The translations under genes and the position numbers were made by a program. A DNA stretch of 64,000 nucleotides from Iphione sp. A-MEVVRFRX5 (taxonomy: Eukaryota). Of this stretch, positions 3,490-45,129 are shown in pieces. The notes under the pieces were generated by a model. The model worked only from the letters and a program-made list of their open reading frames with translations, did not search any database and was not told the DNA's origin. The DNA lies in the NCBI GenBank assembly GCA_976226885.1, contig OZ320315.1:97402001-97466000 (forward strand). The letters run 5' to 3'. Each line of letters starts with the position of its first letter. The stretch's first letter is position 1.

Positions 3490-4530
3490 GCATTTTCAAT
3501 CCTGCTGGTGCCAGCCTGGCCCAACCGGGCTTGGTTCAGCAGAGTGCTGCAGTTGGCTTATGCTCCGCCCCACTATTTTGCAAATCCAGGTTCAACACCC
3601 TGGACCATCTCGGTTGGCCGTCCAGTCTAGGGGCTATAAAAGTTATGGCCCTTCTTTGCTGAACGCAGTGTTAGACCGCAAAGATTTGTTGACTGCCACC
3701 TCTAGGGCAATGATGCTGTGTTCTTGGCAGCCAAAGACCCAGTTATTGTATAATACATACCTTAAAAGGTGGAATACTCTGTGTTTCCCGAAGAATTGAG
3801 ATCCACTGCATCCTACTCTTAAGCAGGGTATGCTTTCCTCATGACTATGTTCGACAGGGGTATCAGGTATAGTGCTTTGAACACGGCAAGAAGTGCTCTC
3901 TCGGCAATTTTTCCCATGTTTGATGGAGTTGCTTTTGGGAAGCATCCTGATGTTGTGAGGCTTCTCACTAGTTTTTTCAATGTAAGACCTCCTGTTTCCC
4001 GTGTAGACTATACTTGGGACATGTCCAAGGTGCTTGATTTCCTGAAATTGTGGGAACCTCTGTCTTCCATGCAATATGCTGCTTCTTTTGGCTACCAGCG
4101 GACTATTTGCAATATTCAGCTTTCAAGCATTCATGATACTGGAGATGGGTCTTTGCAAATTGTCTTCACCAAGACTCTGACACAATCCAGGAAGGGCAGG
4201 TGTGTCTCAAAGTTGAAGCTGATGCCTTTTGTAGCACAACCTAAAGTTTGTGTGGTGAGGTGTCTTAAAGAGTACATCTCAAGAACAGATACTTTGCATG
4301 ATAATCAGGGACATGATGCTCTTTTCATCTCCTTCACTAGTTGCCATAAGTTGGTGGCCACTGCCACATTGGCCAGGGGGACAAAAGAGGTCATGGCGTT
4401 GTCAGGTATTGACACGCAGGTGTTCTCCGCGCATTGCTAAGATGGGAATACCTTTGTCAGAAATTATGAAGAGGGGCATGTGCAGTCATGCTTATACCTT
4501 CAAGTTGTTGAAGGAGGACAGTCCTCCAAC
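3490..4530 (+). mobile_element. DIRS1-type retroelement 3' part: MT-like domain end + tyrosine recombinase, decayed
   Basis: ILLVPAWPNRAWFSRVLQL, SWQPKTQLLYNTYLKRW, YSALNTARSALS, FGKHPDVVR, YTWDMSKVLDFL, CVVRCLKEYISRT, GIDTQVFSAH, GIPLSEIMKRG. Confidence 0.85.
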
Positions 4531-4584
4531 ACGAGCCTCTTAAAGGTCAGAGGCAGGGACAGTTTAACCTGCTCTATTCTGTGC

Positions 4585-5330
4585 TTAATGAGAGCCTGGT
4601 GGGCAGATCTGGACTAGGGCATCCACCAGCGCATCTTGGGCAGACCTTGCCCTAGTGTGCTGCTCTGCTATGGGTGCCACTTGCTCTAGGGCTCTACACC
4701 CTGCGATCATGCCACCCATGATGTCGCCACCTATGCGCTGCAGTGTGCGCTCAGTGGTCTGATGATCTTTGTCCTGGAGATTAGTAAACAAGATATCATT
4801 CAACCGACACACCTGAAGGTGGTCAGTGCCCTCTGGAATCAAATATCTCTTCTGCACATTAGACAGATAGTCCAGCCTGAAGGGGTCCACCAGCTTCACC
4901 GAACAATCAGAAATTGCTGTTTGAAGTGGTGACCCCAACTCCTCTGTACTGGAACGAATCATCCAGCTTAAGCTCCTCCTCCTCCTCCTCCTCATCCCAC
5001 TCCTCTTCATCGGAGGCAGGATGTTGCTGCAGCCAATGCTGTTGCTGCTGTCTTTGCTGCAGTTGCTGCTCATGCTGCCGCTGCTGCTGCTCATGCCAGT
5101 ACTGCTGCTGTTGTTGCAGCACAGAACTCAGCAAATACGCAGTGTGATCCTGCTGCTGTCTCTGCTGAGACTGCAGGACCGCCTGCAGGTGTGACTGCAA
5201 CGACGCCTGGAGTTGAGCCATCATGGCCCAAGGGTCTGTCACAGGGGCCACCGGCGGCGGTGGAATGACAACTGGCACTGCTGGCGGAACGGCTCCATAT
5301 GAGGTGGCTTCATGGCCTTTGTGGATGGCT
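4585..5330 (-). pseudogene. DIRS-type gag-like ORF fragment with poly-Q/poly-E tracts (paralog of 13400-14470)
   Basis: LQRIGGDIMGGMIAGCRALEQVA...AQDALVDAL is nearly the same as the copy at 13.7 kb. CAG and GAG triplet runs at 4970-5160. Confidence 0.65.
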
Positions 5331-6149
5331 AATTTCACAATATTTTTCACTTTGAGATATATTTGACGAGCACAAATTGCGACATCTTCATTGATCCACA
5401 CCCCTGTACCACTGATATTTTGCTCAGATTTGCTTTGTTTTTGAATTTTTTCTCTGTCGCAGATGTTGATAAATTTAATGATATAGACGCTTCATTTGCA
5501 TTCTCCTGAGTGACTATTTTACAAATACTGTTGATCATATTTCTCTTGACTATTTTACAAACACTGTTGACCATATTTCTCTTTAAATCTGTGTCACTCT
5601 CATTTTGATGTATTTTTATATCTCCCTTAAGCACTAGTTTGTTGCACCTGCTTTTCATTTCAGCTAGAATGTGTTCATTTTTTAGCTCTTCGACTTCTTT
5701 CTTGCGTTGACAGAGACTAGGGAGTTGATCATGTAACTGAGGCCTGCAAAGTGTATGTGATCAGTAGGTTTTTTTTAGAGCCAAAGATATTGTTACATCA
5801 CACTGAACAGCTTGTTCACCGATTGAAATAGTTTTAATGCTCGTTCCTAAAATGTCAGTGGGTTGAAATGTCAGTGGGTTGATCAGATAGGTGTAGTAGA
5901 CTTATCGGGTGTGCATTGTATCTGATGCACTGTTGCTTTGTCCTGCGGAGCCCGCTCTGAGAGTGACTCATCAACACCAGTAGTGTCCACGCAGTCCTGC
6001 TCCTTCAAACGCTTGGAAGACTGTTGTGATTGTTTGACTCTGGTTTTTGTTGAATATACCTTTTTACCCATTGTGAAGATAGATAATCTGTGTGTGAAGG
6101 ATGACTGTTGTCACTTGTCCAAGTTATAAGGATTAGACACCAAAATAGA

Positions 6150-6615: not shown

Positions 6616-6642
6616 TGATTGATTGATTGATTGATTTTTATT
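6616..6642 (-). repeat. LINE 3' tail: AATAAA + (AATC)5
   Basis: Plus strand reads tgattgattgattgattgatttttatt, about 100 nt downstream of the ORF2 stop. Confidence 0.85.
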
Positions 6643-6740
6643 GTCAAAATTAACATCACCACGACGGAGCTCTTCCGTAATCGACAGTGTGTATCAGATA
6701 CAGAGTTGCGATATCTTATACTATATTTTACATAATTGTG

Positions 6741-9462
6741 TTACATTTTATTAATCATATTTTTAAAACCATGCATTGTTTTACAATCTCTTACATATAT
6801 TGGCAGTAAGTTCCACATATTGGCCCCCTTTTCAAACATCGACCTTCTTATAATACTGTTCTTGGATCTATACATTTTGATACATCTACCACATCCTTGT
6901 CTTGTTTTATTCAGTGATCTTATCAGAATTTGGCCTTTGATGACCAAGTAATGCATGCTTGTTATTGTGCCCCACCAAAGTCTTCTCTTCAGAGTATCAA
7001 TATCCATAGTCAGAATTGGGTTTTGCCAATTACCATCCATATTCTTACAGAACAGCATTCTAGCACTTCTTTTATAGGCTCTCTCTAGTTTTTCTAGGAA
7101 ACGCTTATTGGATCCTACTATTATGGGGGTCAAGTAGTCTATTTGGGGGTAAATGTACAGTTTAAAAAGCATAACATGGATTTTATGTGGGATATACCTT
7201 TTATATTTGCACAGGTTATACGCACTGTACCAGATATTGCTGATTGCCCTGTTTATGGTTTCTTTCCAAGAAAGGATTTCATTTATGATGTACCCCAGGA
7301 TTTTTAATGTACGTTCCCTTTTTAATGTATGTCCACTGTGTGATACAGAATTACATGTTGGTATTGCATTTTTTATAATACAAAAGGCACTTTTCTCATG
7401 GCTTATTATCAAATTATTTTTCTCACACCAGGTTATGGTGTGGGCGTATGCCTTTTCTATGTTTTCATGTAAATTTATAGGTGTCTCCCCAATGACAACA
7501 TATGTTATGTCATCTGTATATAGGGTGATTGATATGCCATCCGGCAGTCCTTCAGTGATATCATTGATACACATGGAGAATCCAATCGGCCTTGGGGTAT
7601 TCCAAATTTTTGATGTAATGTTTCTGATATACGATTATTTATTTCAACATATTGTTTTCTATTGTGGAAATAATCTTTTACTAATGAGATAATATTGCTG
7701 TCAGCCCCCTCTGCTTGTAGAATTTGTACCACCGTGTTACAATTGAGTAGATCAAATGCTTTTGTCAAGTCAAGTAGAACTTCAGTTATTGCTGTTTTAG
7801 TTGAACGGCCAGGTAGGAACCCATGTTGATGTTTAGACCAGAATTTTATATGGAATAGTTCCTCCCTCAGTTGACAACAGAATAGTTTCTCAAATATCTT
7901 CCCAGGCAGTGGTAGGTTACTTATTGGTCGATAGTTGTTGAGTGAAATTTTATGACCTTTTTTGTAAACCGGTACTATTCTGGCCTTCTTCCAAGCCTCC
8001 ATAAATCTCCCAGTGTGGAGCATATTATTAAAAATGTTTGTGATGTCATCTACAAGGATAGAGAATGCATCTTTAATCCATCGACTCTTCATTCCTGTCA
8101 TATTGCATGCCTAACTAATGTCAATTTTACTTAGTTGCTTTATTACATCTTCTGTAGTAAAGGAATGGAATCTCAGCACATCTTTCCCTCTGCGTTGTCG
8201 TCCAATCTTCGTGACCGGTCGGTTGGCGATAGACTTTTTAATTATTTCTATGAAGTGATTATTAAATGCATCTGGAATTTCACATGATAGCATATCAATA
8301 TTGTCTTCAATTATTGTAACTATATTTGAGTGACGCTTATTTCCAAAGAGGTTCTGAAGGGTTTCCCATAGTTTTGAAGTGTTTTTGTGGTTTTTCAGTA
8401 ATACAGAATTATAATACTGTTCATACTCTTTTTTCACTTAAAGTTTGACTTTTTTGTCAAGAAATCTATAAATATTGTAGGCATCCTCATCACGTTGATT
8501 TTTTGCCTTTTTATGAAAATATTTCCTGTCTCGGATAAGTTCTATTAGATTACTACTCAGTGGTACCGTCCTTTTCTTACTGTGTTTACCTGAGTTCCCT
8601 TTCCTTGCCCCTGCCATATTACCCAGTGCTTTATCGATTGCAGGCTTCATGCTGAGCCAGCTGGACTCTGGATCTCCAACATGGTGTGTGATGTCAGATC
8701 TGAATATTTGAAGTTGCTGTTTAATTTTGGTATATGAGTAGCTGGTAATATTGGTTGCTACAGCTACAGGGGCATTGCATAGATTTTTCCATTTGCACCT
8801 GTTTTTTATTGAGCCTGTATTCCTATGAGATTACTGTATGAGTTTACAATAGTAGTGGCATTATTGAACGCTAGGGTATTCATGAATATTAAGTCATTGA
8901 TTTTTTGGTTACCCACCGTAGTACTTCTGTTAATGAGTTGCATAAATCCTTGGTTTGACATGATGCATGATAACTTTTCTATTCGTGGATTTGTGGATAC
9001 CCAATTGATGCTTAAATCACCAATAATAACCACACGATCATTTACAATTGACTGCCCTCTATCAAGGAAGGATTTAAATTCGTTACAGAACTTACCCATG
9101 GGGCCATCTGGTGGTCGATATCGTACTACAACATAGAAGATTTTACATCTTCTAAACACTACACATACCGTTATACATTCAAATAGGTCACAGTTGATAG
9201 ATAGTTCACTGATAACATGTGCATTACACTCATTTCTGATATAGAGCAATATACCACCACCAAGTGATTTTTTCATTGAGACTCTATCTTGTCTAATCAC
9301 CTGGAATCCTTGTAGGCTTAACCGTGAGTCATCGATTTTGTGATTTAACCAGGTTTCAGTGAAGCATGTGATCATACACCTCGATGTTATGATATCATCC
9401 TGAATAATTTTTAATTTTTTAAAAATGCTTCTGACATTGTAATGGCATAGCATGAATTTCAT
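6741..9462 (-). pseudogene. Copy 1 ORF2, APE endonuclease + reverse transcriptase, several stops and frameshifts
   Basis: HYNVRS, FTETWL, GGGILLYI, IIGD (APE). WKKARIVPVYKKG, YRPISNLP, QHGFLPGRST, DLTKAFD, GIPQG, YTDD (RT). Confidence 0.92.
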
Positions 9463-9481
9463 AGCATAGGCAAACAGCGTC

Positions 9482-10018
9482 TTAGTACAGGTAACAATAG
9501 TTGTCAGTTAGAAACCTTTCAATGCGCCTTACCCATGTGTCGGTTACTCGATAGTCAATCTCGTCATCCTTGTTGATCAAGTCACCCCTAAACACTGCAT
9601 TTGTACCAACAATCACATTGACTGGAGAAGCTGTGTCTGGGGTCCCCAGTCCATTTCTATTGTTTATGGCCTCTACCAGGCAGTTATGGATGGAGAAATG
9701 CTTATTCAAGACGCGTTGCTCTGGGGATAGGTAGTTCGTGATTTCCCATAAGTCATAGTCAAGCACCATCTTACTGTCGTACCTTGGTCTCAGCCCCACT
9801 TGTGGATTATATAGGACCGTGTCGTAGAACCCTATATAGATGAAGGTGATGTCGACTCCCACCATCGATGTCTCATTGACTCTTTTGATGATGTCCTTGT
9901 ATTTCCCTTTGGGGATAATGATCATCGTCCAGTTGAAGTAGTCTCCAACGTAGTTTTCCACCAATCTGCCAAAATCTTGGCCCTGGGTGTCTGTTATAAA
10001 ATTGACCCTTGTTGGCAG
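9482..10018 (-). CDS. Copy 1 stand-alone SGNH/GDSL-fold ORF (CTG at the start position, internal in-frame deletion)
   Basis: The frame is open from 10018: LPTRVNFITDTQG...ITFIYIGFYD...ERFLTDNYCYLY. Homologous to 19881-20481. Confidence 0.65.
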   Translation of the reverse strand: MPTRVNFITDTQGQDFGRLVENYVGDYFNWTMIIIPKGKYKDIIKRVNETSMVGVDITFIYIGFYDTVLYNPQVGLRPRYDSKMVLDYDLWEITNYLSPEQRVLNKHFSIHNCLVEAINNRNGLGTPDTASPVNVIVGTNAVFRGDLINKDDEIDYRVTDTWVRRIERFLTDNYCYLY

Positions 10019-10639
10019 AATGAGCCTGCAAAAAAAATATGTAATTTTGCAGGCAGACTCTGAGTATGTCAGTTTTGAACGATATCACAGTTGGTCAGAG
10101 TGAGCTCCCCTCTGATTATTGTGAGTGCTTCTCCTATATAATTCCTACCAGGGCAGGTCCCGGCTGTGACCACCTCATCATACAAACCACACGCACTTCC
10201 ATATGTATTGTGATTTGAAATGTCTAAGATTTTCTTACCTTCGGTGAGTTTCAGATGATTGATGATTCCTTTCTCTTAGTATTTCAATGAGAGTGTCTTT
10301 CTCTGTGTTCTCCCAGTGATCTATGGTTTTGATTGTGGCTCTGTTGCGTCTTACCCGTGTTGGGTTTGCCGACTGTTGGATTTTTCGCGCTGCCTCTGGG
10401 TCATTACATAATCTTGCTTTTGTTACTTGCAATGCATGCTCAGCCGTCCTATGTTCCTCACCATATATGGTAACAGGCGTTGGGTGAAGCATTGATAATT
10501 TGCATGAAGGACCCCTGAATGTGAAAACGTCACTGTTAACAACCATGTTGGCATTTTCGAGCGTTAATCCATGTTGTAGTCTCTCGATTTTTGTGTGACA
10601 GTACAATACTCCTTCAATACATATTGATAGGGCGAAACC

Positions 10640-10674
10640 TTCGAATAAAAATATATTATTATTATTATTATCAG
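10640..10674 (+). mobile_element. 35-nt retro-insertion consisting only of AATAAA + (TAT)n tail, inside copy 1 ORF1
   Basis: ttcgaataaaaatatattattattattattatcag flanked by cc on both sides. Removing it restores GIVGFAL, matching GVSGLAL in copy 2. Confidence 0.6.
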
Positions 10675-11050
10675 CCTACTATGCCAGCTTTGAGGCCCTT
10701 CTTTCTAGCATGATGTGCTATATCATGCAAATTTTGATAAATCTGCCTTGCGTCTCTCGGCACATCCTCTCTTAGATAGATGTAGGCATACTCCTCACTG
10801 TCTCTCAGCTTGTATCTTTTGGAATAAATTTTGTTTCTTGCAGTGACAGTTTTGAACTCCACCTTCACCAGGCGCTCTCTGCCATGCTGGTATACTCCTA
10901 GCCACTCCACCGAGCTAATTTCATGTTCTTTGATTTCCCCATCAATCATATTAGCAATGTCGTAGATCGTCTCCTTTAAGTCGTATTTGGGGTTATCTGG
11001 GAGTCCTGACGCTATCAGATTTTTTCTCCTATCATATGTTTTCTTAGAAA

Positions 11051-11150
11051 GCTCATTATGAATTTGTGGTTTGGGCAGATCATTAGCGAGGGTTTTCACC
11101 TAGCTCATCATGAATTTGTGGTTTGGGCAGATCATTAGCAAGGGTTTTTT
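11051..11150. repeat. Tandem duplication, about 52-nt period, within copy 1 ORF1
   Basis: gctcattatgaatttgtggtttgggcagatcattagc occurs twice. Confidence 0.9.
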
Positions 11151-11704
11151 CCGGAATGTGTGTGTTAGTATGTTTGTGAGTGGCCTCATCTTCTGTTGGG
11201 GTGCATGGATCTGTCTTTGGGTTTGGATCGATTTAGATCTCCAGTTCAGCTACTCTGGCAGTCATTTCATTTAGTGTCCTGATTAGTGTTATGTTGTCAG
11301 TTAGTAGCTGTTTGATTAGGCAGTCTTGTTTGGAGATAGCTTTATCAGTCATGGTTCTGATTTTTTCCATCTGTTGTAAGATATGGATTTCATTGTCCAG
11401 AATGACTGATGGTATATTATTGAGATCTGAGTCATGGCTATTACCTTCAATACGTCGTTGCCCCGTGCAGTGCTCCTTGTCTTGGCTACCGTTCATGTTG
11501 GCACTGACGCCAGTCAGTGTGGGTGATAATTGGTGCCCACGCTCGTACTTCACGCGTAACGGTTGGTTTTTGAATTGTCTCAATTTACTATAGTATCTCC
11601 ACAACCTATCCCTATGTCATAATCAACATACAGTGTAATTGATGCCTCACCATTAAGGAACCGCAGCCTTCCAAATGTTATTCAGAGCCATCTTATGCTT
11701 TCAT

Positions 11705-12454: not shown

Positions 12455-13789
12455 TTACGAGGCTTCTGCCATGAATCTCCTATGGGCTGCCTTCTTTGAA
12501 CTTAATTCTTGTGAAGTATAAACTAGAGTGGAGGGGGTAGCTACCCATGTACCCTGAGCTTTGATCTCCTCCAGGGTAGCCCCTATTTGCTGGAGGTGGG
12601 TAGCCCCCCCTCTCCTAAAACTATGTAGCGAATACATTTTTGGCTGGAGGCCCAGGGATGAGATCACGACCTTTAAAACTGAAGCAATAGTTTCGACCTG
12701 GAATGGTCTTTTTAACATCGGGTCGCGAAACAGAAGCTGAGGGTCCTCTGTTGTTGGTTCCGAACGGATCATGGCTTCTAGGAGGGCAGTTGGACAGTAC
12801 ATGGGGTTAGTCAAACGCAATTGGAAAATGGTTCTTTTAGTGTTAGTCGATATAGTCTTTGACCACTGAATGAGAACTGCTGTGTGATTCTCTGAAATAG
12901 TAATATCCTGGCGAGTAAGTTGTTTTGCGCAATCGTATTCCAAGAATCTTTTGACAAATACATTAGACTGTCTCAGCAAAGAGTGGTGGAGAAAACAGAA
13001 GATAGCCTTTAAGACCGTTGCTAAAGGGCCTAAGGCCTGACAATAGTCTATCATTAGTTTAAGCTGGTCGTACGTGACTGGGAGCTTTCGTAGGATCTGG
13101 TGGGTTGATGTCTTTCTGGCAACACTCAAGGGACTCCAGTTTTTCAATAAGGGTACAATTCTAGCTAATTTCCAACCGTCAGGAAAAACTGACTTATTCA
13201 CCATTGTTGTAAATCGGTCCAACATAATCATCAGGGTATCTTTTAACACAGCAGCAGTTATACCATCCAAACCAGATGGTTCAGTTTCAAATTCCACCAG
13301 GTTTCGGTCACAGTCAAAATCTTCCACTGTCTTGTTTACTTTTGCCCCATTTCCCAGCTTTTCAATGCTCTCAACAAGCCACCATGGCCCCTGCTCTTGC
13401 TCTGCCCTCTCCGGGAGTTTTTTGACCCCCCCTGATGAAGCAGCAGTGACTGGCTTCCTCTCTCTCTCTAATTGGCCCACTAAGGCCAAGTTCTCCTTCA
13501 CCTGCTTCACCTTCCCGAGGAGATCATCTCCAAACAGGAAGCGCGGTGAAGGAGGACAATCCTGGGACACCAGCCTTTTAAAAGCAGGAGGCAAGGATGG
13601 CTTGACCTCTTCCCTCCAGTGCTTAATTAAAGCCTGGTGTGCAGATCTGGCCAACACCAAAGCATCCACGAGTGCATCCTGTGCAGCCTTGGCCCAGGTG
13701 TAATGTTCCGCCATAGAAGCCACCTGTTCCAGAGCCCTGCACCTGGCAATCATTGCACCAATAACGTTGCCTCCAATACGCTGAAGCAT
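12455..13789 (-). CDS. 444-aa chimeric ORF: DIRS gag C-terminus + LINE RT fragment + Ngaro/PAT tyrosine recombinase catalytic domain
   Basis: aa 1-137 gag (FLFGDDLLGKVKQ). aa 138-217 LINE (VESIEKL, PSGLDGI, FPDGWKLARIVPLLK). aa 222-444 YR with R (LLRQSN), K (WSKT), HSFRR, GTW and Y intact. Confidence 0.75.
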   Translation of the reverse strand: MLQRIGGNVIGAMIARCRALEQVASMAEHYTWAKAAQDALVDALVLARSAHQALIKHWREEVKPSLPPAFKRLVSQDCPPSPRFLFGDDLLGKVKQVKENLALVGQLERERKPVTAASSGGVKKLPERAEQEQGPWWLVESIEKLGNGAKVNKTVEDFDCDRNLVEFETEPSGLDGITAAVLKDTLMIMLDRFTTMVNKSVFPDGWKLARIVPLLKNWSPLSVARKTSTHQILRKLPVTYDQLKLMIDYCQALGPLATVLKAIFCFLHHSLLRQSNVFVKRFLEYDCAKQLTRQDITISENHTAVLIQWSKTISTNTKRTIFQLRLTNPMYCPTALLEAMIRSEPTTEDPQLLFRDPMLKRPFQVETIASVLKVVISSLGLQPKMYSLHSFRRGGATHLQQIGATLEEIKAQGTWVATPSTLVYTSQELSSKKAAHRRFMAEAS

Positions 13790-14479: not shown

Positions 14480-15150
14480 CCCGCAACTGTGATTCTCCCA
14501 GAGAGTTACTATCCGACTTTCTGTGAAACAGGCAAAAATCGGTAAGTGATCACTAAATCTTTCACTGACGTTTAGGAGTGATCTTTGCAACTACCTCTTT
14601 CATGCGTTGACGATTTAATGATCTGCCAAAAGCCATAACTGTTCGCCCAATAGTCACAATCTCTCTGCGGACCTGTCCAGTCAAGCCAATTCACATTAAA
14701 ATCACCAATCACGCTCACATCCTTCTGCCTCATTAACAGATTGTCCAGTATATCTAGAAATTCCATGACCCTACATGTGGTGATTGATAAGCAACCCCCC
14801 TGGTTTGCAGGTCACGGTATTCCCCCCAGTGGTCCAGAGTAACAATATTCAGTGATCACCTCAGTGAGATACTCCTGTCTGACATAGAGGGCAACACCTC
14901 CACCAGTCTTTTTTGCAGTCTTCGTCAAGTCCCTATTAAGTCAAAGATGTTCATAGCCCGGTAGTTCCATTATCCCTAAAGGCAATCCCTCCTTTAACCA
15001 TGTCTCAGTTACACCAAAGATATCAAAACTCTCGTGCCCTAACATTATTTCTAATTCGCCTAGCTTCCCTAACAAGCTACGACAGTTCCAGCGAGCTTTA
15101 ATCCAAAGGAAAAGAAAAGAAAACGATGCCATGATGTTATCCTTAAGCAC
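14480..15150 (-). pseudogene. LINE APE endonuclease relic
   Basis: WNCRSL, FGVTETWLK, LPGY, GGGVALYV, VIGDFNVNW, SDHLPI. Confidence 0.85.
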
Positions 15151-15776: not shown

Positions 15777-16849
15777 GTTGAGGTATGTATCGATATAATG
15801 TTGGACGGCTGATCCCCTCTGTAGTTCTGCTGATGTGGGTACGTGGACAGTTCATGGTGTGTATGTGGCCTGGCCTGGGGCACTAGCAAAAGGAGGCAAA
15901 TGGTGAGGATTAACAGAGACATGATTATGACAAGAAAAACCTGGCTGGTGCTAGGGGAGATGCATAGTGTTGTTAGGCAAAATACCCTGTTGTCCCGGCG
16001 GGACACGAGCATTTAGTAGACTGCTTGTCAACGGGTTGTGTGCGCTGTCCTGAATAGACAACTGAACTGCTTGGGGTTCAGTAGAGCCTTGTTCTTGGGT
16101 CCCTGCATTCATTGTCTGCTGGGCAGATGTTGTATGCATGGCCTGTAGCGTGTCCACCGGTGTTGTTCCCGCCGAGGTAGTCTGACTCGTCTTACCAGTC
16201 GTCGCCGGCACGTGTTGGGGTATGGTCGGCTGGTTAGAACAGAATGGCATGGTTTGCCCTGCATTGAGGGTTTATATACTAATCTATTACATAAGGCCTG
16301 CACATAAGACCTGTACACGATCACCTCATAATGATTCGCCCTCCCTCGATGCCGTCACCATGTGGATACTTAGTTTACCCTGACAGACAAAGTCAGGCCT
16401 TACAAACATAGTGAGTAAATGATTGACGCCAGAAATACTTACTTTTTATCAGCATTGAATGTCATCGTACCATACAATCCCACACCGAATGATCTCAACT
16501 GATTGCAGATTGTCCCCGACGTCCATTAGAACTTTGCCACACAGATTGTTAGCCGGGCAATCTTCATTGTCTAGACGTTTTTCACAAAAGGAAAGTCCTG
16601 CCCCAAATATTATATTGCGCGTCGCTTTGACCTGTTCAAAGTAAAAGGTCTCTCACACTATTGTTCTGAGTTACCTTAGCAACAAGACCTTCTCGTACTA
16701 ACTTCTCTGCCTTCATTTTCCAGTCCTGAGACTTGTTTACCTGCTTCCCAAGAGATTTTGCATGAAAAGGATTTATCTCCCAATTAATGTGGTCGCCTAG
16801 GTCGTGGTCACCACTATCACGAGCACTCTCAGACTGTACATAGTGGTCC

Positions 16850-17005
16850 CCCAAGTCCAGATGCCAAGTGTTTGTGCTCTGGCAGCAGATAAGGTTTCAC
16901 ATCCTCTCTGCGGTATTTGTTGACATGTGAATTAACCAAAGCAATGATAAAGGCAAGATCAGTGAGCATTTTCCCTAGATCATTTACCCAATAGCCTTGA
17001 TCTGA
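16850..17005 (-). pseudogene. DIRS1 gag fragment
   Basis: DLAFIIALVNSHVNKYRREDVKPYLLPEHKHL matches the DIRS gag RRE.xKP.L motif. Confidence 0.5.
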
Positions 17006-17096
17006 ATGTTCATGTAATAATAATAATAATAATAATTTTATTGTCTCAAAAGTTCTTCTCATAGAAGATATTCATGATGGGACATTATACATTCAT

Positions 17097-19870
17097 TCAA
17101 TGTGTTACACGTAGGGTTCGGTAGAGTTCCTTCATACTTTTACAGTTACGTACATCAACTGGTAGTGAATTCCACCAGTGGTAACCAATTTCAAACAAAG
17201 ATTTGCGAATAATTCTGGCTTTTGAGTGATACATTTGAATTCTCATGTTTCTGCCAGCCCTCGTATTGGTTCTCTTATTAAGAGGTATCATGCCTTTTAA
17301 TACCAACATATGTACAAGTTTTATAGTGATGGATTTGATTCTTATGTCAAAATCATCGATTAGTCCTTTGTAGACAGGATTTTGGCAGTTACTATTTAGT
17401 TTTTTGCAAAGTATCATACGTGCACATCTGTTGTAGGCTCGTTTTACCTTATTGATGATGTTTTTGTTCATACCACAGATGAAGGGGGCGATATAGTCCA
17501 CAAATGGGTATATGAACAGTTTAAATAGTGTTACTCTAATTTCAAGGGGAAGGTATTTTTTCATTTTACATATGGTATACGAGGAATTCCACATACAACG
17601 TATAGCATTATTACATGTCTCTTTCCAATTTAGTTTTTCATTTACCACATATCCTAGTATTTTTAGATTGCTACAATGATTCAGTTTGCAGTGTTTTGTG
17701 AATTCTTCAGTGAATGTTGTACTATGGTTCCCTATAGTACAAAACAAGTTTTTTTCATTATTTACAATCAAATTGTGGCTTTTGCACCAAGCTGTCGAGT
17801 AATTATAAGCCATTTCTACATTTTTGAGTAGATCATGTGGGTCTGCACCTTTAACCACAAAAGTGATATCATCCGCATACAATGTTATTTTCATGTTTGG
17901 AATATTATCGGCAATACCATTTGTGTAGATCGCAAAACCAAGAGGGCCAAAGGTGCTGCCCTGTGGAATACCTGTATCCCGAGGTAACAATTTGGAATCA
18001 TAATTGTTTATCCTGACATATTGGTACCTATTAGCGAAATAATTTTTAATTAAGTCAATCATTGATTTATCCATACCTTCTGCATTCAGAATTTTTACAA
18101 TTAGCTCCTGGTTGAGGACATCGAACGCTTTGGTTAGGTCTAGGGCTACCACAGCCACCAAGTAACCATCATTAATATAATCCATACAGTTACGTAGTAT
18201 ATTTGCCATGGCTGTTTTTGTCGATCTGCCAGGTATGAACCCATGTTGATATGGTGACCAGAATTCTGTCTCAAACAACTGTGATATTAATTTTTGACAA
18301 AAATTTTTTTCAAATATTTTACCAGGTAACGGTAGATTACTTATGGGTCTATAACTCATGATAACATCTTTTTTCCCTCTTTTATGAATCGGTACTATTC
18401 TGGCAATTTTCCAGGTATCAACATATTCACCTGTTCGTAAGATAGTATTATACAATAATGTTAAAGGGTACAAAGATATTTTGAATGCATCTTTGAGGAT
18501 TTTGCTGTTCAAACCAGTTATGTTACTAGATTTGTTAATATCGATATTACTCACCACCTTCATTACCTCTGTTGGGGTGAATCCATGTATTTGGACATTG
18601 CCAACTCCTCGCCTCATTGGATGTACCTGTAGTTCTGGCATGTTAGTTGTGATATCTTTTATTATATTAGTAAAGTAAGTATTAAAGGTATCAGGTACTT
18701 CATTATCCGCAACCGGCTTACCATCTACCATGAGTGTGATCTTCTCATCACGACTTTTGCCTCCAATAAGTCGATGCAATACCTGCCATAATTTCTTTGG
18801 ATTCTTTTTCGAACTAAGTATTTGATTGTGGAAGTGGTTCTCATATAGTTTGTATAGTTCATTTTTAACCTTATTGTCAAGGAACCTGTAGATATTTTTA
18901 TCATCTTCCAGGTGAAATTTTTATATTTACGTAAGAAGTACCTGCGATCTTTAATTAATTCTGACAGATAACAATTGATTTTTACAATTCTCCTAGAGCA
19001 AGATTTTGCACGCTTACGTGCTGCTGTACTGAGCTGCCCAACACATTTCCTGATTATTTCTAATATATTATCCCATAATTGATTTGGGCCTTGGTCGTAG
19101 TTGATTTTGTCTAGTTCAGGTAACATTATGTTTTGAGTTTCTCATAGCTGTAGTCCGAAAATAAAATATTGGATTTTGATTCACATAGTGGATTTTTGTA
19201 TTTTACCCCAGTCTTATAAGTTTATTTCACTCCTAGGTGATCACTATAGGATGTACTCGTAATCGCGGCACCATGTAGAGAGTAATGATTGGCAAATATC
19301 AAATCATTTATGGCCTCACCATTTACCATAGTGCTTGTGGTTATCAGTTGGGATAGATTAAAAGGCAGGAAAGTTTCAGTCAGAGATTTCGTGTTTGATT
19401 CATTAACACCCCAGTTAACATTGAAATCACCTATGATTATTATGCGTTCATGGTCAGACGGTCCCCATTTTTGTAGTAGGTCTTTGAATGCTGTAACGAA
19501 ATTACATACCAAGCCACTAGGTGGCCTATATAGTACAAGTACATTTATAGGTTTGCATTTGCTGTAGGTTAATTTGAAGGCAAGTAATTCAAAAAGGTCC
19601 CTATTAACGCATAGCTCAGGCAGCAGGATAGATTTACATATGTCTGTAATATATACCAATATGCCGCCACCAGTCCTTTTTTGAATAGAGTTCCTGTCTT
19701 GTCTTAGGATATGATATCCAGGTAGATGGAGGCACGTGTCGTCGATGTTGCACTTGAGCCATGTTTCAGTTAGACAAGTCACAGTATTCAAAGAGTCAAT
19801 AATGTCATCCTGGATAATTTTTAATTTTCGTATAATGCTTCTTACATTATAATGATGGATTGTCATTTTC
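17097..19870 (-). pseudogene. Copy 2 ORF2 APE-RT (CR1/L2-like), stops and frameshifts in the linker
   Basis: HYNVRS, LTETWL, IIGDFNVNW, SDH. A 560-aa open RT segment contains GIPQGSTFGP and LYADD. Confidence 0.95.
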
Positions 19871-19880
19871 ATCACGATAT

Positions 19881-20481
19881 TTAGTAAGCAAAACAATAGT
19901 TGTCCACCAAAAACCTTTCTAGCTCCTCTAGCCATTGGTCAGTTACGTATCCTGGTACATCTCCGAAGGGGCTTACTAGATCATCGTTGAACACAATATA
20001 GTTCCCAATTATTTGATTAATTGGAGAGCAGGTGTCTGGCGTGCTAAAGCCGTTGTTGTTGTTCATGGTCTCTACCAGTCCATTGAGAAGAGCAATATGA
20101 TAATTTAAATCTCTTTGGGTACGAGTGAAGGGGCCATCTATAGCCATCCCATGGATTGGTAGGAAAACTACGGTGTGACTGTAGGGTTTGAAGAGGCTAT
20201 GGACGATCGAGGTCATATCCTCCCATAGATCGTACTGTAGCGGAAGAGAGGTGGAATATCTAACTACAGGTTGGTCCCCTTCATATGCTATAAGATTATT
20301 AAAGCCCAAATAAATAAACGATACATCAACACCCAGTTGTGGTATATTGTTGAGATTATCCAAAACCGGCAGCAGGCATCACTATGCTTGTCCACTCAAA
20401 GCGGTCTCCAAATACATATTCGGCCAATCGCCCCAGCTCGTGTCCTTGGACATCGGTGATGAAATTCACTCTAGGTCCCAT
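19881..20481 (-). pseudogene. Copy 2 SGNH/GDSL-fold ORF, one frameshift near 20365
   Basis: MGPRVNFITDVQG...VSFIYLGFNN...ERFLVDNYCFAY. ATG at 20481. Confidence 0.7.
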
Positions 20482-20563
20482 CGTGTGACAGTCCTGATGA
20501 AAAGGTAGATAACATTGCATTCAGATGTTGTATAGTCGACTTCGTTGGGATGATATGTCACCA

Positions 20564-22129
20564 TTAATGTTTTGTGATAATTCCACCCCTGATCATGGTA
20601 AGCGCAAGCCCTACATAGTTACGACCAGTGTATGTGCCTGTGACCAGGCTATTGTCTTTCAAGCTACATGCACTACCATATGTACAATGTCGTGATACTT
20701 CAATCAGGGTCTTACCTCTCGTGAGCAGGAGTTGATCTCTTATGTCGTCTTGTTGGTGATTCCTAGCAGTTAGTATTGCACTGAGTGTATCAAGCTCTAT
20801 GCCTTCCCACTCTGTAGTGGTTTTCACTGCGTCTCCGATGCGTCTGGCCTCATATGGGTGGGGAGTGAGTACGATTTTTTCTGCTGCCAGAGTGTCATTG
20901 CACGTTTGAGCCTTGGTATACTGCAGCGCATGCTCTGCCGATTTAAAAATTTCTCCATTGTACTCAAGGGGGAGGGGGTATAGGGGGGACAGCTTACAGC
21001 TGGCACCCCGAAACGCAAGCAAGTCGTCTGTGTCAACTATATTCGCTGATTCCCATGTTAATCCCTCGGGTAGTTGGTCGAGTGTATTGGGGTTGTATGT
21101 AACACCGTCCACTCGTAGCGCCAACCCCGAGACTCCTGATTTTAATCCCTTTTGTCTTGCAAGCCCCGCTATGTCTTGTAGTTTCAAGTAGGTAGCTGAA
21201 GCGTTTTTCGGTATATCCTCTCTTATATATACAAACGAATATTCCTCAATATTTTTTAGCTTATGTCATTTTGAATAAATAGCGTTTCGTGCTTTTGTGG
21301 ATGTGAACTGAATTTTCACCAGTCTTTCTCTCCCTGGTAGGGCTTTTCCAAGTCTTTTTATGCCTAAGACGTTTACCTCAGTGATAGCGCTATCTATTGA
21401 GTTAATGATGTCATACACTGCCTCATTAAGATTATATTTATCACTGTCAGGTAATCCCTGTAGAATAAGGTTGTCTTTCCTGCTTAAAATTTCTTTCTGT
21501 AGTTCGTCATAGTCAGGGTGCTCGGATCTAACTGTGTTCTCAGTAGTAATATGGATAGTATTTTCGGTGAGTGGTGGTGCCGTGTTAGCTGATTCATGTT
21601 CCTCATCCATTGTACTATCTTGGTTAACAGGAGAATAGTGTTTGCCCATACTCATTTCAATTTCTGAGATACGGTCCATGGCTGTATTGAGTAGGTTCAT
21701 TAAGTCCCTATTATCCTCATGCAATTTTTTAATGATGGAGTTTTGAGCATTTACCAAATTCTCAGTATTCTCCTGTATTTTCTTCATTTGAATAAGGATA
21801 TATCTTTCATTGTCGAGCACAGTCCCTAATATCTCATCTTGTATACAGATGTGTGGTTTACCTTCACGGGGTTGACCTTCCGTGCGGGGTCCCTTAGGCA
21901 CAGGCCGGCGTCTCATGCTGCTCAGGTCCGTGTCAGCGGGCGATTTTACAGTAGGGCGCACGTAGTTCTCACTTGCCATATCACCGTTACGCTGTGGTAC
22001 ATCCAACGATACCGATTTGGCCCCCAATTTAACTGTTTCCTTTGGTTTTTCACTGTTTCCTTGCTTGTAACGTCTTGTTCTTCTTCTTTCCTCCAACTTT
22101 GTCGTTTTGCAGGTTTTGGTTAATGCCAT
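20564..22129 (-). pseudogene. Copy 2 ORF1 (521 codons, single in-frame TGA at 21266-21268): coil + RRM/CTD + NADAR
   Basis: The two ORF-track pieces are in the same frame (AIYSK*HKLKNIEEYSFVYIREDIP). NADAR about 21030-20567: SAEHALQYTKA, PYEARRIG, EWE, LLLTRGKTLIE, GRNYVGLALTMIR. Confidence 0.9.
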
Positions 22130-22199
22130 AATATCGACTTAACGGTACATTCTTAGGGAGCGCTCGACAGACACGTCTTAACACCATGACGACTTTCCA

Positions 22200-22980
22200 T
22201 AAACGGGGTGCCAGCTGTACCAGTGCAATTGTTTTGGTTAGAGTAGCAATAGCCACAACACACTCCCCCTGTATTTTCTGAGAGAAACGATTCCGAACTT
22301 TGACATCTTTAGGCAAGGAAGCCCAAATGGCCTCGTTTATTTTGGTATTTTTCAACCAAGAAGAGTTCGAGGGTGGGGGATAACCTTTGTAGAGATTCAA
22401 AAACCCTTCCGAAGAAATAGGCGATGAAAAACACTGATCTATGAAGTGAACCACCTTTGCAGATGCTGGTGGCCCCACTAGTGGATCTGAAGCCAAATGG
22501 GAAGTGGCCACATCCAAGAAATCATCATCGCCTCGAGTAGTTTCCTCCTGAGAAGTAGAAGGAACCTTAGGTTGAGGGGTTTCCTGATTTGGGACAGACT
22601 CTTGTTCTACCACATGAGGGTGAGGTAGTTCAGACTTAGAACCAGGCTGAGACGCAGAGTCTTCATGAGAGGACTCATCATCTGATACCTGGTGGTCAGG
22701 ACGTTGAACTGACTATGCATATCCAGACCCAGCAAAGGCAGCCACTGTATCCGCTATAGAGTTAATACCGTCCGAGAGATTTTACCCAGACTGCAGTTCC
22801 TTATGCCTGAGTCAAAACGAGAAGTTATAGTGCAAATAGATGAATAAAGCTGCTAAAATAGGGTCTGAAGCAGTTGGGGAAACAGAAGTAGAAGTAGAAG
22901 GGATAGGTTCGTTCTGAATAGGAACCACGTTTTGGACCTGCACCGGTACGCTGATGGTGATTATACGTAATACCATAGAC
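22200..22980 (-). pseudogene. DIRS1 gag fragment
   Basis: GPPASAKVVHFID...YKGYPPPSNSSWLKNTKINEAIWASLP...SQKIQ is a typical DIRS1 gag segment. Confidence 0.65.
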
Positions 22981-22999
22981 CCCAATATTCAGCCCACGA

Positions 23000-23400
23000 A
23001 CTGAGGCCCCGGGGCCCTAACTGCAGGCCAATGAAGCTATCAATTGTAGCTGTTTATTCCTTTCGACTCTGGACTCGTGTAGAGCTTCCCTCAGGTAGAC
23101 ATTTTTAGCCCTAACGATCCGTTTCAGGTCAGCGGCTTTGATGAGAATGCTATTCCTTGCGTCGACACAGGTAAGTCTCGCTAGGACACTACGCGGTTTG
23201 TTCCCTGGCCTACCCATGCGTGTCGCACTTAGGAGTGAATCGGCATTATAGTCAGGGTCCAGTTTCTTGAGTAGAATGTTCACTGTGTCCCAAGCTGTGA
23301 CGTTGTCTTGTTTAGCTAGATTGTCAACAAGTTCTGTTTTCTCACATCCGATTCAAGATTCATTATGCTACTCGAATTCCTTCCAGCTAGCTGTCTGATT
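23000..23400 (-). pseudogene. Fourth L1-type RRM ORF1 fragment, cut before the NADAR position
   Basis: DVRKQNLL..., TRMGRPGNKPRSVLARL..ARNSIL...VYLREAL parallels the RRM of copies 1-3. Confidence 0.65.
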
Positions 23401-24759: not shown

Positions 24760-26060
24760 AGAGTAATAATACACAATACCAATAACATCTGAAAATGAGA
24801 AATACGTAATTCAACTACGTAGTTAAACTGGTCGGAACAGTCTCACTAAATAATGTAACCTAAATTTGACCAAAATTAAACAATATGATTCAGTATAAGT
24901 TCACTGTCATACATAATGTGAATTAATCAGACCTAGCATTCAATCTACATGAACGTTTTCAGACCTGTACCTACTCATGACTTGCTCTTTAAGCAATTTC
25001 TCAAGTTTTACAGTGTTCAAATCACATTTGAGATACCTCGGAAGTGAAGTCCACATTTGCATACCTCGATAGATCAGAGAATTTCTGTATATTTCACGTT
25101 TCACCTTTTCCAATCCCCCTAGGGATAATCTAGAATACCTTGTTTCCCTTAAATTTTTCTTATATATATATTATATTATATATGAACGAAGTTTCTTTGC
25201 ACATTTTTTTATAGATGTTGATTAATTGAATGTCACTTCATTGCTTTAAAGGTAATAGGTGCAAATACGCCTCAGTGTCACCTCAAATTCATTCATGTTA
25301 TTTGATATTGTTGGAATTAAAAAAACACCTGTACTCTGCAATTGACTGTATGTATGCCTTCAATAATGTAACCAATGTGTCCCTGTCAATTGAAGGTATC
25401 ACATTTTCGAAGATTGATTACACTTCCAAATAACACATAACTCAGTTTTCTTCTGCAGCTGTCAAGGCACTTGTATATAGAACAGTATCGTCTGCATGCA
25501 ATACAATATTGCCCTATTTAATGTACGTTTCAATGTCATTTACAAAAATGCTAAAAAGCATAGGTCCGAGAGTGGAGCCCTGAGGGACCCCACATCTTAT
25601 GATACCTTCTCATGATTCAAAACACAGACTGAAAGATAGGTAATTCCTGAACCACGTTCTCACACCTGCCAAACCCCAACTTGTAATCTGTTCTAATAGT
25701 ATCTGATGATTGACTGAGTCAAATGCTTTACGAAAGTCAATGAATATAGCTCCGACCAACAGATTATTATTTATAAAATATAATCTGTTAGCAGCCTTAG
25801 AGCTGTCCCTGTGCTATAATTTCGATGGAATCCATGTTGATAATTACTAAGTTGATTGTTCTGTACACAAAATTCATCACCTGTTCAAAACCATAGGTTT
25901 CAATTATTTTGGCAAATACATTTAGTACACTTCTTGGTCTATAGTTTGATACTTCAGTCAATTATTAGCTTACAAGATGATACTTTGAAAGGTCTACTTG
26001 CTTGCAGAATCGCACAAATTGATTTTTGTGATAGCCAATATTAGAAGGTGTGTTAATATT
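24760..26060 (-). pseudogene. 5'-truncated CR1/L2-type LINE RT relic
   Basis: Manual minus-strand translation: NYRP.SVL, QHGF, FIDFRKAFDSVNH, GVPQGSTLGP, LHADD. Confidence 0.85.
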
Positions 26061-43392: not shown

Positions 43393-43491
43393 CTTTCGCA
43401 CTAGCAAGGGAGAGAAAAACACATATCATAGCCTACACATCTGAATGCGATTGCCTGAGATCCGGATGCATATGAAGATACAGGCTCTAAA

Positions 43492-44664: not shown

Positions 44665-45129
44665 GATAACAATAAACAACAAATGACACAAAATCAACAA
44701 AGCAAAGCTGAAAATACTCCTTTTGATGATCCTGGTAAGAAAATAGTATCACAATTTACCTTTACCCTATCTAGCTTCTGCAGGAAGTCTGGTATGTCTT
44801 GTATGTAAGATTTAGTTCCCTTGATGATAGGTTTCAAGAGTGATGGCTTGGGGGATTCAGGAAGTAGTTGCCTGGCTATCTCCCACGGGATTTCGTCTTC
44901 TTGTTGGAGGTGTGTAATTAGTGTCTTTATACTCTATACCAGGGTCAGTTTCCAGTGTTTGTCACTGAGTTGTCTCACCCCTTCCATTCTGTTTTCTTCT
45001 GCACCCCATACAAGGTGCCCAACGACAACCAACGGCAAAAAAAGAAAAAGGCTGTAGGTGGCTAAGGTGGCTACAGTGGGTGGTACTCCACACTACAGAC
45101 TAGTTGGGGGTGGTCAGTGCAAGATGCAT

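Follow-up and report, generated by a model that had tools for sequence, protein, structure and literature searches.

NADAR domains have been described in retroelements before. Several Repbase Tx1 LINE families of the oyster Crassostrea gigas have an ORF1 that appears to contain a YbiA-family NADAR domain (PMC12477816; Genome Biol 2025), and like the elements reported here, they are non-LTR retrotransposons that carry this domain on the ORF1 protein. These oyster proteins contradict an earlier note on this DNA, which knew of no described LINE ORF1 with NADAR. The published account of them is one sentence and a supplementary alignment, without architecture, distribution, active-site analysis, or function, and we compared the oyster families with our elements by that description. 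The same paper reports an Ectocarpus Gypsy lineage with a NADAR domain at the N terminus of Pol. This is likewise a retroelement that gained a YbiA-family NADAR, but it is an LTR element rather than a LINE and carries the domain in Pol rather than in ORF1p, and the acquisition was presumably independent.

The ORF1 protein itself has known counterparts. Type II ORF1 proteins are known from the L1, CR1, L2, and R1 clades, and human LINE-1 ORF1p (2YKO/2YKP, 2LDY), which is of this type, stops after the C-terminal domain (CTD), whereas the ORF1 of our elements continues with a NADAR enzyme domain of roughly 150 residues. The esterase-type ORF1p of ZfL2-1 (CR1/L2/RTEX/Penelope; PMC3905857) resembles our elements in that an SGNH-fold protein is encoded upstream of ORF2 and an enzyme-type domain is found among the accessory proteins. 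However, the ZfL2-1 esterase is catalytically active and fused to a coiled coil inside an ORF1 protein without structured RNA-binding domains (PMC3905857), while the SGNH-like protein of our elements lacks the catalytic Ser and His and has an ORF to itself, the second, which follows an ORF1 of the RRM type.

E. coli YbiA (2B3W), a Phytophthora nicotianae NADAR (8BAU), and the phage and DarT1-associated NADARs share their fold and Pfam family with the LINE domain. The known NADARs stand alone, whereas the LINE NADAR is fused to an RNA-packaging protein; phage and LINE NADARs are alike in being carried by a selfish element. Both YbiA-family and eukaryotic proteins are among the NADARs reported to hydrolyze ADP-ribose linked to guanine or cytosine in DNA and RNA, and the same reports give no activity on thymine-linked ADP-ribose. 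E. coli YbiA is also reported to act on a metabolite (riboflavin intermediates), and the chemistry of the family is therefore not restricted to ADP-ribose.

Three diverged elements share one gene order

The window analyzed is a 64,000-nucleotide stretch of contig OZ320315.1 from Iphione sp. A-MEVVRFRX5. Element A occupies positions 17015-22129, and all of its parts are on the minus strand. Its ORF1 starts with an N-terminal part (21269-22129) that contains a basic N terminus, a coiled coil, and most of an RRM; the family profile shows its homology to L1 ORF1p. The C-terminal part (20564-21265; family profile, 232 bits) completes the RRM and continues through CTD-like strands to the NADAR domain. 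The NADAR ORF (20564-21187) and the coil/RRM ORF share a reading frame, in which one stop codon (21266-21268) stands between them, which shows that ORF1 is broken in this copy. An SGNH-like middle ORF (19881-20520) begins at an ATG near 20520 and has a frameshift near 20360-20380. ORF2 comprises an apurinic-type endonuclease (APE) part (19222-19935; Pfam Exo_endo_phos_2, 32 bits), a linker piece (18725-19126) that differs in frame from both of its neighbors because of frameshifts, and a reverse transcriptase (RT) part of 560 codons (17097-18779; Pfam RVT_1, 94 bits), which has a C-terminal WN.LP motif and no CCHC. The element ends with a (TTA)n microsatellite tail (17015-17036), just before which stands GACAATAAAA. 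Position 22200, given in the earlier note as the other boundary, does not fix the 5' end. Element A is a dead copy: its ORF1 has a nonsense codon, its middle ORF is frameshifted once, and its ORF2 contains two or more frameshifts.

Element B (about 6616-11604, minus strand throughout) is a decayed, dead copy with the gene order of element A: a coil (11233-11604), an RRM (10671-11099), a NADAR domain (10072-10730), an SGNH-like ORF (9485-10084), an APE (8806-9462), an RT (6741-8437), and a (TCAA)n tail (6616-6636), which is the same type of ending as in element A. All three ORFs of element C, also on the minus strand, are open. ORF1 (43492-44700; 402 codons, first ATG at 44664) encodes a short coiled coil, an RRM, a CTD, and a NADAR domain (about 43504-43905; Pfam NADAR, 45.3 bits), and it is followed by an intact SGNH-fold middle ORF (42676-43422, first ATG at 43392). 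A stretch of 924 nt (41752-42675) in which every minus-strand frame contains stops separates the middle ORF from an intact APE-RT ORF2 (38995-41751; 918 codons, both domains matched by Pfam), and no second copy of this stretch was found within the window. The ends of element C were not found, and 38995-44700 spans its ORFs.

By tblastn, amino acid identity to element A is 43-52% for element B and 25-28% for element C, and the order coil-RRM-NADAR, SGNH-like, APE-RT is present in all three diverged elements, as the earlier note had described; Pfam confirms the APE and RT domains, and the assignment to non-LTR retrotransposons is supported. Alignment of the ORF2 proteins with human L1 ORF2p was restricted to the RT core (38 bits), and no C-terminal CCHC was present, a result that we take to be weak for an element of the L1/Tx1 group.

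ORF1 is an L1-type protein with an appended NADAR domain

The NADAR ORF of element A matched Pfam NADAR (PF08719) at 64 bits (E = 2.5e-17) over about 20585-20968, above the curated cutoff of 35.1 bits, which the domain of element C also exceeded. All of the NADAR motifs quoted before for element A are present, EVSRHCTYG included. Compared with solved structures, the family profile matched NADAR 8BAU (E = 1.6e-37), YbiA 2B3W (E = 1.4e-31), and, over coil, RRM, and CTD, human LINE-1 ORF1p 2YKP/2YKO (E = 4.6e-18). An AF2 model of element C ORF1 (pLDDT 86.5) matched 8BAU and 2B3W (TM 0.67, normalized to target length) and also the human LINE-1 ORF1p trimer. The profile and fold comparisons that the earlier note had proposed thus both bear out an ORF1 that ends in NADAR, and the model matches indicate an L1-type coiled coil-RRM-CTD protein with NADAR appended. 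Individual ORF1 proteins from the window did not reach Pfam Transposase_22.

The fusion is widespread. In an exhaustive search, 225 protein clusters aligned across the RRM-to-NADAR span at E <= 0.001, and Pfam NADAR was matched by 100 of the 101 clusters tested. This span can be aligned in full between elements with only about 27% identity in the RT. RRM, CTD, and NADAR share one open frame in element C and in the external loci L002, L006, L007, and L008. Outside the window, two sequencing samples gave five loci (L001, L002, L005, L006, and L007) in which an APE-RT ORF lies downstream of the NADAR-bearing ORF1, and NADAR-bearing ORFs are linked to retrotransposon genes there as well; in L008, from a third sample, a NADAR-bearing ORF1 was present and no APE-RT Pfam match was found among the downstream genes. 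The LINE ORF1-NADAR fusion is real and widespread, yet it had already been mentioned briefly for oyster elements in 2025.

The middle ORF has an SGNH fold without catalytic residues

The middle ORF had no Pfam match. Nevertheless, a model of the element C protein (pLDDT 68.5) gave 56 Foldseek matches at E <= 0.001, and all 50 of those listed have a GDSL/SGNH fold, which supports the earlier assignment of this ORF as SGNH. Block I and block V read ITDVQG and DDLVSP in element A, with neither Ser nor His, and LSDRRS and DGFTP in element C. The catalytic Ser and His are absent from the ORF in elements A, B, and C, while relatives from another genome retain SDS...DGxHP. The window proteins are therefore unlikely to be esterases, and by analogy with the OSK domain of Oskar, each is most likely a noncatalytic binding module.

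The NADAR active site is conserved in the family and atypical in the window

We aligned 156 sequences (150 search hits plus six taken from the window and from loci that we fetched). E43 is present in 151, K50 (as K or R) in 149, W89 in 151, E125 in 144, D130 (as D or N) in 142, and W133 (as W, F, or Y) in 151. The catalytic Glu/Lys/Glu set, which the LINE family at large has in common with YbiA-family hydrolases and whose positions are reported from mutagenesis to matter in NADARs, is thus kept in more than 92% of the sequences.

All three window copies are atypical by this pattern and, relative to YbiA-family hydrolases, unusual at D130 and W133 (A and B) or at E125 (C). Element A has His for D130, Tyr for W133, and Glu for R93 and retains the equivalents of E43, K50, and E125. 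The E-x4-D-x2-WG motif is indeed altered in element A, as had been cautioned, but the catalytic Glu is retained and the changes are Asp to His and Trp to Tyr. Element B has the same His and Tyr, together with Asp at the E125 position. Because the H..YGSAC variant is common to A and B, it was inherited and is not a product of recent decay. In a solved NADAR complex, the D130 and W133 positions contact pyrophosphate, and the substitutions suggest altered ligand handling in the A/B lineage. Element C has Tyr at E125, the defining Glu, and Leu at W133, and its domain may be capable of binding only.

In the comparison of A with B, synonymous differences have reached saturation (pS 0.71-0.88), and the nonsynonymous difference is 0.33-0.36 for NADAR and 0.34 for RT. 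Between these two copies, NADAR is thus under as much constraint as the RT.

Proposed function of the NADAR domain

We propose that these are autonomous APE-type LINEs whose L1-type ORF1p carries a C-terminal NADAR N-glycosidase that removes base-linked ADP-ribose as a counterdefense, and we give this proposal about an even chance. The NADAR would travel in the ribonucleoprotein particle in many copies per RNA and would strip ADP-ribose from guanine or cytosine bases of the element RNA, the cDNA, or single-stranded target DNA; ADP-ribosylated bases left in place would block reverse transcription or translation. Such an activity would counter pierisin/CARP-1-type ADP-ribosyltransferases that act on bases, much as phage NADARs neutralize DarT1. 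Enzymes of this type are found in marine invertebrates; CARP-1 homologues are reported mainly from bivalves and also from Cnidaria, Porifera, and Bilateria. That base-linked ADP-ribose is removed from RNA and DNA of the element is our inference only.

The domain might instead process RNA of the element itself or some NAD-derived group, for example, an NAD-derived cap or an ADP-ribose-type RNA-end product, as housekeeping in the life cycle. Processing of RNA intermediates has been put forward for the elements of Ectocarpus and the oyster, with reference to an association of viral NADARs with RNA processing (PMC12477816); the superfamily name is said to reflect links to NAD and RNA processes, and the domain sits on an RNA-binding protein. 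We nonetheless find this doubtful, since most LINEs manage without NADAR (none in a survey of 448 Jockey-superfamily ORF1s), and the NADAR reports cited demonstrate reversal of base ADP-ribosylation as the activity on nucleic acids and RNA-end or NAD-cap processing for no member.

It is also unlikely, in our estimation, that the NADAR of the window lineages is noncatalytic, an ADP-ribose or nucleotide reader or a structural part of the particle kept after the loss of catalysis. The substitutions at the defining Glu and the Trp in element C, those at ligand-contacting positions in A and B, and the Asp of B speak for such a role, and the adjoining SGNH-like ORF, without Ser and His in three copies, shows that pseudoenzymes occur in these elements. 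Against this stand the three catalytic residues retained in element A and the set kept across the family. Moreover, Asp is reported to be the working residue at the E125 position of DarT1-associated NADARs, and phage NADARs with His in place of the family-defining Glu there are reported to be active, so substitutions in this region need not abolish catalysis.

The weakest part of the earlier interpretation is its link to PARPs, by which the NADAR would erase or read ADP-ribosylation that PARPs place on the insertion intermediates of LINEs. [quoted passage not shown] However, the linkages that PARPs form with protein side chains or terminal phosphates differ in their chemistry, NADAR activity is documented in the reports cited only on N-glycosidic guanine- or cytosine-linked ADP-ribose and on no PARP product, and NADARs are reported to be absent from vertebrates, where the interplay of PARP and L1 was studied; we regard this reading as very improbable. 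Published phylogenies that list animal NADAR "genes" without transposon context might suggest a host gene or captured host exon merely lying beside LINE fragments, but this reading of the NADAR ORF is refuted by the one-frame fusion in element C and four external loci, the alignment of the RRM-to-NADAR span across diverged RTs, the same order in A, B, and C with two more ORF1 fragments in the window, and the APE-RT ORFs downstream in five external loci.

Element A lies within an older relative

A fourth copy of this ORF1 type, the older element E, is represented by two fragments that flank element A on the minus strand. An RRM-CTD fragment lies upstream of A (23020-23352; profile positions 117-222, E = 2e-11), and a NADAR fragment in two pieces with a frameshift (16452-16896; profile positions 298-418, E = 8e-14 and 6.5e-06) directly adjoins the tail of A. 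The two fragments are colinear, which places element A inside the ORF1 of element E. The family profile also detected a weak fifth fragment of the same ORF1 type in the window.

Organization of the NADAR-bearing elements

Element A, a non-LTR retrotransposon, occupies positions 17015 to 22129 on the minus strand of the window. Its ORF1 (521 codons, 20564 to 22129) carries one in-frame stop at 21266 to 21268, the middle ORF (19881 to 20520, minus strand) contains a single frameshift, and ORF2 lies in three minus-strand frames, with the APE endonuclease at 19222 to 19935, a linker at 18725 to 19126, and the reverse transcriptase (RT) at 17097 to 18779. The element ends in a (TTA)n tail at 17015 to 17036, preceded by GACAATAAAA. 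We found no flank of at least 9 nt common to both sides of A that would represent a target-site duplication.

When pieces of A were used as tblastn queries, two further elements, B and C, were detected on the same strand and in the same order, with matches far beyond chance. This result agrees with the claim of an earlier note, made from the sequence alone, that the same architecture occurs in three diverged elements. Element B (approximately 6616 to 11604) is heavily decayed, ends in a (TCAA)n tail, and is 43 to 52% identical to A in the tblastn-aligned domains, with the middle ORF at 37 to 45%, depending on the alignment. At the 5' edge of the RRM ORF piece of B, positions 11050 to 11148 contain 1.9 tandem copies of a 52-bp unit (95% match). 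Element C (38995 to 44700) is 25 to 28% identical to A and has three open ORFs: ORF1 (402 codons), the middle ORF (248 codons), and ORF2 (918 codons). The RRM and NADAR domains of C share one frame in ORF1, and its ORF2 matched the Pfam families Exo_endo_phos, Exo_endo_phos_2, and RVT_1 (105 bits), placing the APE endonuclease and the RT in a single ORF2; Pfam also detects both in A, where frameshifts separate them. The ends of element C were searched for and not found.

The spacing between the middle ORF and ORF2 differs among the elements: the two overlap in A, lie about 20 nt apart in B, and are separated in C by a 924-nt stretch (41752 to 42675) in which every minus-strand frame is interrupted by stops. 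We found no second copy of this stretch in the window or in external loci from sequencing samples (L001 to L008). The window has no runs of N, and Rfam and tRNA scans of it were empty. A bacterial promoter and terminator scan was set aside as irrelevant to a eukaryotic element.

A profile of the RRM-NADAR ORF1 family detected a fourth, older ORF1 copy, element E, with its RRM-CTD half at 23020 to 23352 and its NADAR half at 16452 to 16896, both on the minus strand. Since the two halves are colinear and lie one on each side of A, element A, together with about 870 nt of unassigned sequence (22130 to 22990), is embedded in this older ORF1, so that one member of the ORF1 type is nested within another. 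The 870 nt upstream of A resembled neither B nor C nor any other part of the window, and a 187-codon ORF at 22050 to 22613, between the ORF1 start of A and the older copy, had no Pfam hit. The same profile also gave a weak ORF1-family match at 4910 to 5491.

Identity of ORF1 and placement of the elements

Pfam NADAR (PF08719, curated cutoff of 35.1 bits) matched ORF1 of A with 64 bits (E = 2.5e-17) and ORF1 of C with 45.3 bits; the NADAR fragment of B reached just 28.8 bits because a frameshift cuts the domain. Searched against the PDB, the family profile matched the Phytophthora nicotianae NADAR 8BAU (E = 1.6e-37) and YbiA 2B3W (E = 1.4e-31), as well as the LINE-1 ORF1p structures 2YKP/2YKO (E = 4.6e-18), over chain residues 3 to 174 spanning the coil, RRM, and CTD, and 2LDY (E = 4e-12). 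An AlphaFold2 model of the C ORF1 protein (127 aligned relatives, mean pLDDT of 86.5) shows a YbiA-like helical fold, and homology between A and C extends across the entire span. When we compared the model with the PDB using Foldseek, 8BAU and E. coli YbiA 2B3W were matched with a probability of 1.0 and a target-normalized TM score of 0.67. A second group of matches comprised the human LINE-1 ORF1p trimer 2YKO/2YKP/2YKQ (TM, 0.46 to 0.62) and its RRM-CTD 2LDY, and the third consisted of generic RRMs. The motifs quoted in the earlier note are present, and its proposal that ORF1 ends in a NADAR domain, for which it had named HMMER and Foldseek/AlphaFold comparisons as the check, is confirmed by profile and, in the C model, by fold.

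Single ORF1 proteins from the window missed the threshold of Pfam Transposase_22, and a phmmer search of the PDB with the A NADAR piece alone found nothing, whereas matches were obtained with the canonical L002 domain and with the family profile. Taken together, the family profile matches and the C model indicate that ORF1 is a type II L1-like ORF1p with a C-terminal NADAR added, running from a coiled coil through one RRM and a CTD to the NADAR domain. Type II ORF1p occurs in the L1, CR1, L2, and R1 clades (PMC4120745), so the ORF1 type does not fix the clade of the window elements.

ORF2 from the window matched human L1 ORF2p with 38 bits in the RT core only. The C-terminal CCHC is absent from ORF2 of this type, which has a common C-terminal [YF].G...WN.LP motif. 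Some members end in a microsatellite, others in AATAAA and an A-run. The weak L1 match, the WN.LP motif, the lack of a CCHC, and the tails may fit a CR1/L2-like placement better than a Tx1 placement. The labels that we weighed were Tx1, after PMC12477816, and CR1/L2-like, from the WN.LP motif, the tails, and the association with SGNH.

An SGNH-like fold without the catalytic Ser and His in the middle ORFs of the window

The earlier note had assigned an SGNH domain to the middle ORF. The fold stands, in that 56 Foldseek matches at E ≤ 0.001 were obtained with a model of the C middle-ORF protein (pLDDT of 68.5), the best 50 of the 56 all being of the GDSL/SGNH fold, with a top TM score of 0.69. 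However, a Pfam search of the middle ORF returned no family, and the catalytic Ser and His are lost. All three window copies lack the nucleophile Ser of block I and the His of block V: the two blocks read SDR and DGFT in C, TDV and DDLV in A, and TDT and GDLI in B. Searching with a middle-ORF profile, we identified 21 relatives, each about 216 residues long, with the SGNH-like blocks ILIVSDSRG, GAT, AGICS, and DG[ILV]HP, and the relatives from another genome (L001 at 4407 to 4841 and proteins P0274 to P0293) keep SDS and DG[ILV]HP. Judged by these residues, the window proteins can best be seen as pseudo-esterases akin to the noncatalytic SGNH domain of Oskar (PMC3905857). Within this LINE group, some lineages may have a working esterase and others an inactive one.

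Across L001 to L008, the middle-ORF profile matched L001 and the window only, with no match in L002 or L005 to L008, showing that the three-ORF layout is not universal in the family. In L002, L006, and L007, ORF1 and ORF2 are separated by 0.8 to 1.1 kb with no detectable middle ORF.

Distribution of the fusion and its prior description

A word-indexed protein search with the C ORF1 found nothing. An exhaustive search of 1.84 billion representatives identified 225 clusters at E ≤ 0.001, most of them 380 to 580 residues in length with one continuous alignment that starts at the RRM and reaches the NADAR C-terminus, and Pfam NADAR matched 100 of the 101 sequences tested. We then considered the linkage to ORF2 at the external loci, of which L001, L002, L005, and L007 are from sample ERZ25767047, L006 is from ERZ26222911, and L008 is from ERZ25069853. 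A NADAR-bearing ORF1 lies directly upstream of a 949- to 982-residue APE-RT ORF in L001, L002, L005, L006, and L007; L008 also has a NADAR-bearing ORF1, followed by short fragments without an APE or RT Pfam match. The L002 ORF1 aligned to that of A from the RRM through the NADAR domain (E = 1.5e-29), while the best external RTs, that of L002 included, are about 27% identical to the C RT. That ORF1 is still alignable over this span at such RT divergence argues that the fusion is old relative to the divergence of the elements. Immediately upstream in L002, positions 1 to 2008 encode a Gypsy-type Pol (RT, RNase H, and integrase), which is just neighboring transposable element content.

These data bear out the earlier structural reading of ORF1, the middle ORF, and ORF2, in domain identities, order, and APE-RT linkage. 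Its suggestion that no LINE ORF1 with a NADAR domain had been described does not hold, since a study of Ectocarpus transposable elements (Genome Biology 2025, PMC12477816) notes, in one sentence, what appear to be YbiA-family NADAR domains in ORF1 of several Tx1 LINE families, listed in Repbase, from the oyster Crassostrea gigas. The same study describes a Gypsy lineage with NADAR in Pol, and it was the one relevant paper that full-text searches on NADAR in LINEs or transposons brought up. The fusion itself is already in print, and what is new here is not its first discovery but its breadth, the active-site data, and the architecture, together with the L1-type domain context, the pseudo-esterase middle ORF, and the nesting of A in an older copy.

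Conservation of the NADAR active site

We mapped reference residues from the P. nicotianae NADAR-ADP-ribose complex and from mutagenesis of the E. coli C7 NADAR (PMC11543638) onto 156 aligned family members, using P. nicotianae numbering. E43 is Glu in 151/156 sequences, W89 is Trp in 151/156, and E125 is Glu in 144/156. The remaining positions vary more: K50 is Lys in 120 and Arg in 29 of the 156, D130 is Asp in 101 and Asn in 41, and W133 is Trp in 121, Phe in 21, and Tyr in 9.

Compared with this conserved family active site, the window NADARs are atypical and have derived sites. The first Glu and the Lys seven residues on are present in A (AEHALQYTK) and B (AEHALQVTK), and C has Glu and Arg at these positions. 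Element A keeps E43, K50, W89, and E125 (IEVS) and has His at D130 (2/156), Tyr at W133 (9/156), and Glu at R93. Element B has the same H..YGSAC string as A and an Asp at the E125 position, and C combines the Arg at K50 with Tyr at E125 (3/156), Asp at D130, and Leu at W133. The intact D130/W133 pair of the E-x4/5-D-x2-WG motif, which makes pyrophosphate contacts, is found in none of A, B, or C. Because the H..YGSAC variant is common to A and B, it is a lineage trait and not the decay of one copy. PMC11543638 and PMC11125620 classify NADARs by the residue at E125, with Glu marking the YbiA family, Asp the BC4488 type, and His the phage type; this definition places A in the YbiA family, and C lacks the defining Glu.

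Synonymous sites are saturated between A and B (pS, 0.71 to 0.88), which makes a dN/dS ratio unusable, and we therefore compared nonsynonymous differences across domains. These were 0.33 to 0.36 for NADAR, 0.34 for the RT, and 0.37 for APE. The earlier note had held that an absence of purifying selection on the domain would count against its reading; the NADAR value equals that of the RT, and this comparison of two sequences indicates that purifying selection on NADAR is as strong as that on the polymerase.

Possible function of NADAR in the elements

The usual view of LINE ORF1 proteins is that they are chaperones that package RNA. A 2013 study described the SGNH esterase as the sole case of an enzymatic function in an ORF1p (PMC3905857), and a survey of ORF1 domains in 448 elements does not list NADAR (PMC4120745). 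A second class of ORF1p enzyme, represented by hundreds of clusters with conserved catalytic residues, suggests that some retrotransposons must undo chemical modification of nucleic acids.

A mechanism can be proposed that starts from the observed domain identities, their order, the APE-RT linkage, and the conserved catalytic residues. ORF1p would coat the element RNA, with a NADAR domain riding on every subunit. The domain would scan the RNA, and then the cDNA and nicked target during target-primed reverse transcription, for base-linked ADP-ribose and would remove what it found. The chemistry has support in the literature: according to PMC11543638 and PMC11125620, hydrolysis of guanine-linked, not thymine-linked, ADP-ribose on DNA is common to NADARs of the YbiA family, of eukaryotes, and of phages and to those associated with DarT1, and a 2026 study extends the hydrolysis to cytosine and to RNA (PMC12945103). 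That study describes CARP-1-type guanine ADP-ribosyltransferases as exclusively eukaryotic, occurring mainly in bivalves and also in Cnidaria, Porifera, and Bilateria.

Two main alternatives to removal of ADP-ribose from element nucleic acids have to be considered. The domain could have a housekeeping role in RNA processing, or it could act as a noncatalytic reader, a role that the active-site residues make a candidate for C and possibly for A and B. The scenario of the earlier note, in which NADAR acts against PARP activity, is less plausible than counteraction of base-directed enzymes, as the literature that we examined reports no NADAR activity on PARP products and NADARs are reported, in PMC11543638, to be absent from vertebrates.

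A broader proposal, which we consider unlikely, is that NADAR-LINEs are an old, widespread invertebrate lineage with its own eraser of nucleobase ADP-ribosylation, that base ADP-ribosylation of the pierisin/CARP-1 type is a eukaryotic defense against retroelements, and that the LINE NADAR is the counterdefense, with the corollary that many "animal NADAR genes" of current phylogenies are transposon ORF1s. If true, this would be a eukaryotic mirror of DarT1 versus the phage NADAR. The NADAR phylogenies in PMC11125620 show mollusc, cnidarian, arthropod, and other "animal NADARs" as host proteins, and given the 225 clusters of ORF1 type, some published "animal NADARs" may be transposon ORF1s.

Neighboring sequence

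Other mobile element sequences are present in the window. A 513-codon ORF at 62406 to 63947 (minus strand) encodes another LINE RT (RVT_1, 102 bits) that is 31% identical to the A RT and shares the C-terminal motif; the ORFs upstream of it would fall outside the window. A 444-codon ORF at 12455 to 13789 (minus strand) matched the tyrosine recombinase family Phage_integrase with 25 bits, just under the cutoff, and may belong to a DIRS/Ngaro- or Crypton-type element. Between 26859 and 30111 (minus strand), successive ORFs match RVT_1 and the RNase H-like family RVT_3 weakly and probably represent the remains of a retroelement from a different class. A-related pieces of APE or RT sequence, all short, were found at 318 to 758, 13142 to 13345, 14593 to 15093, and 25487 to 25789, marking the region as a pileup of LINE debris.
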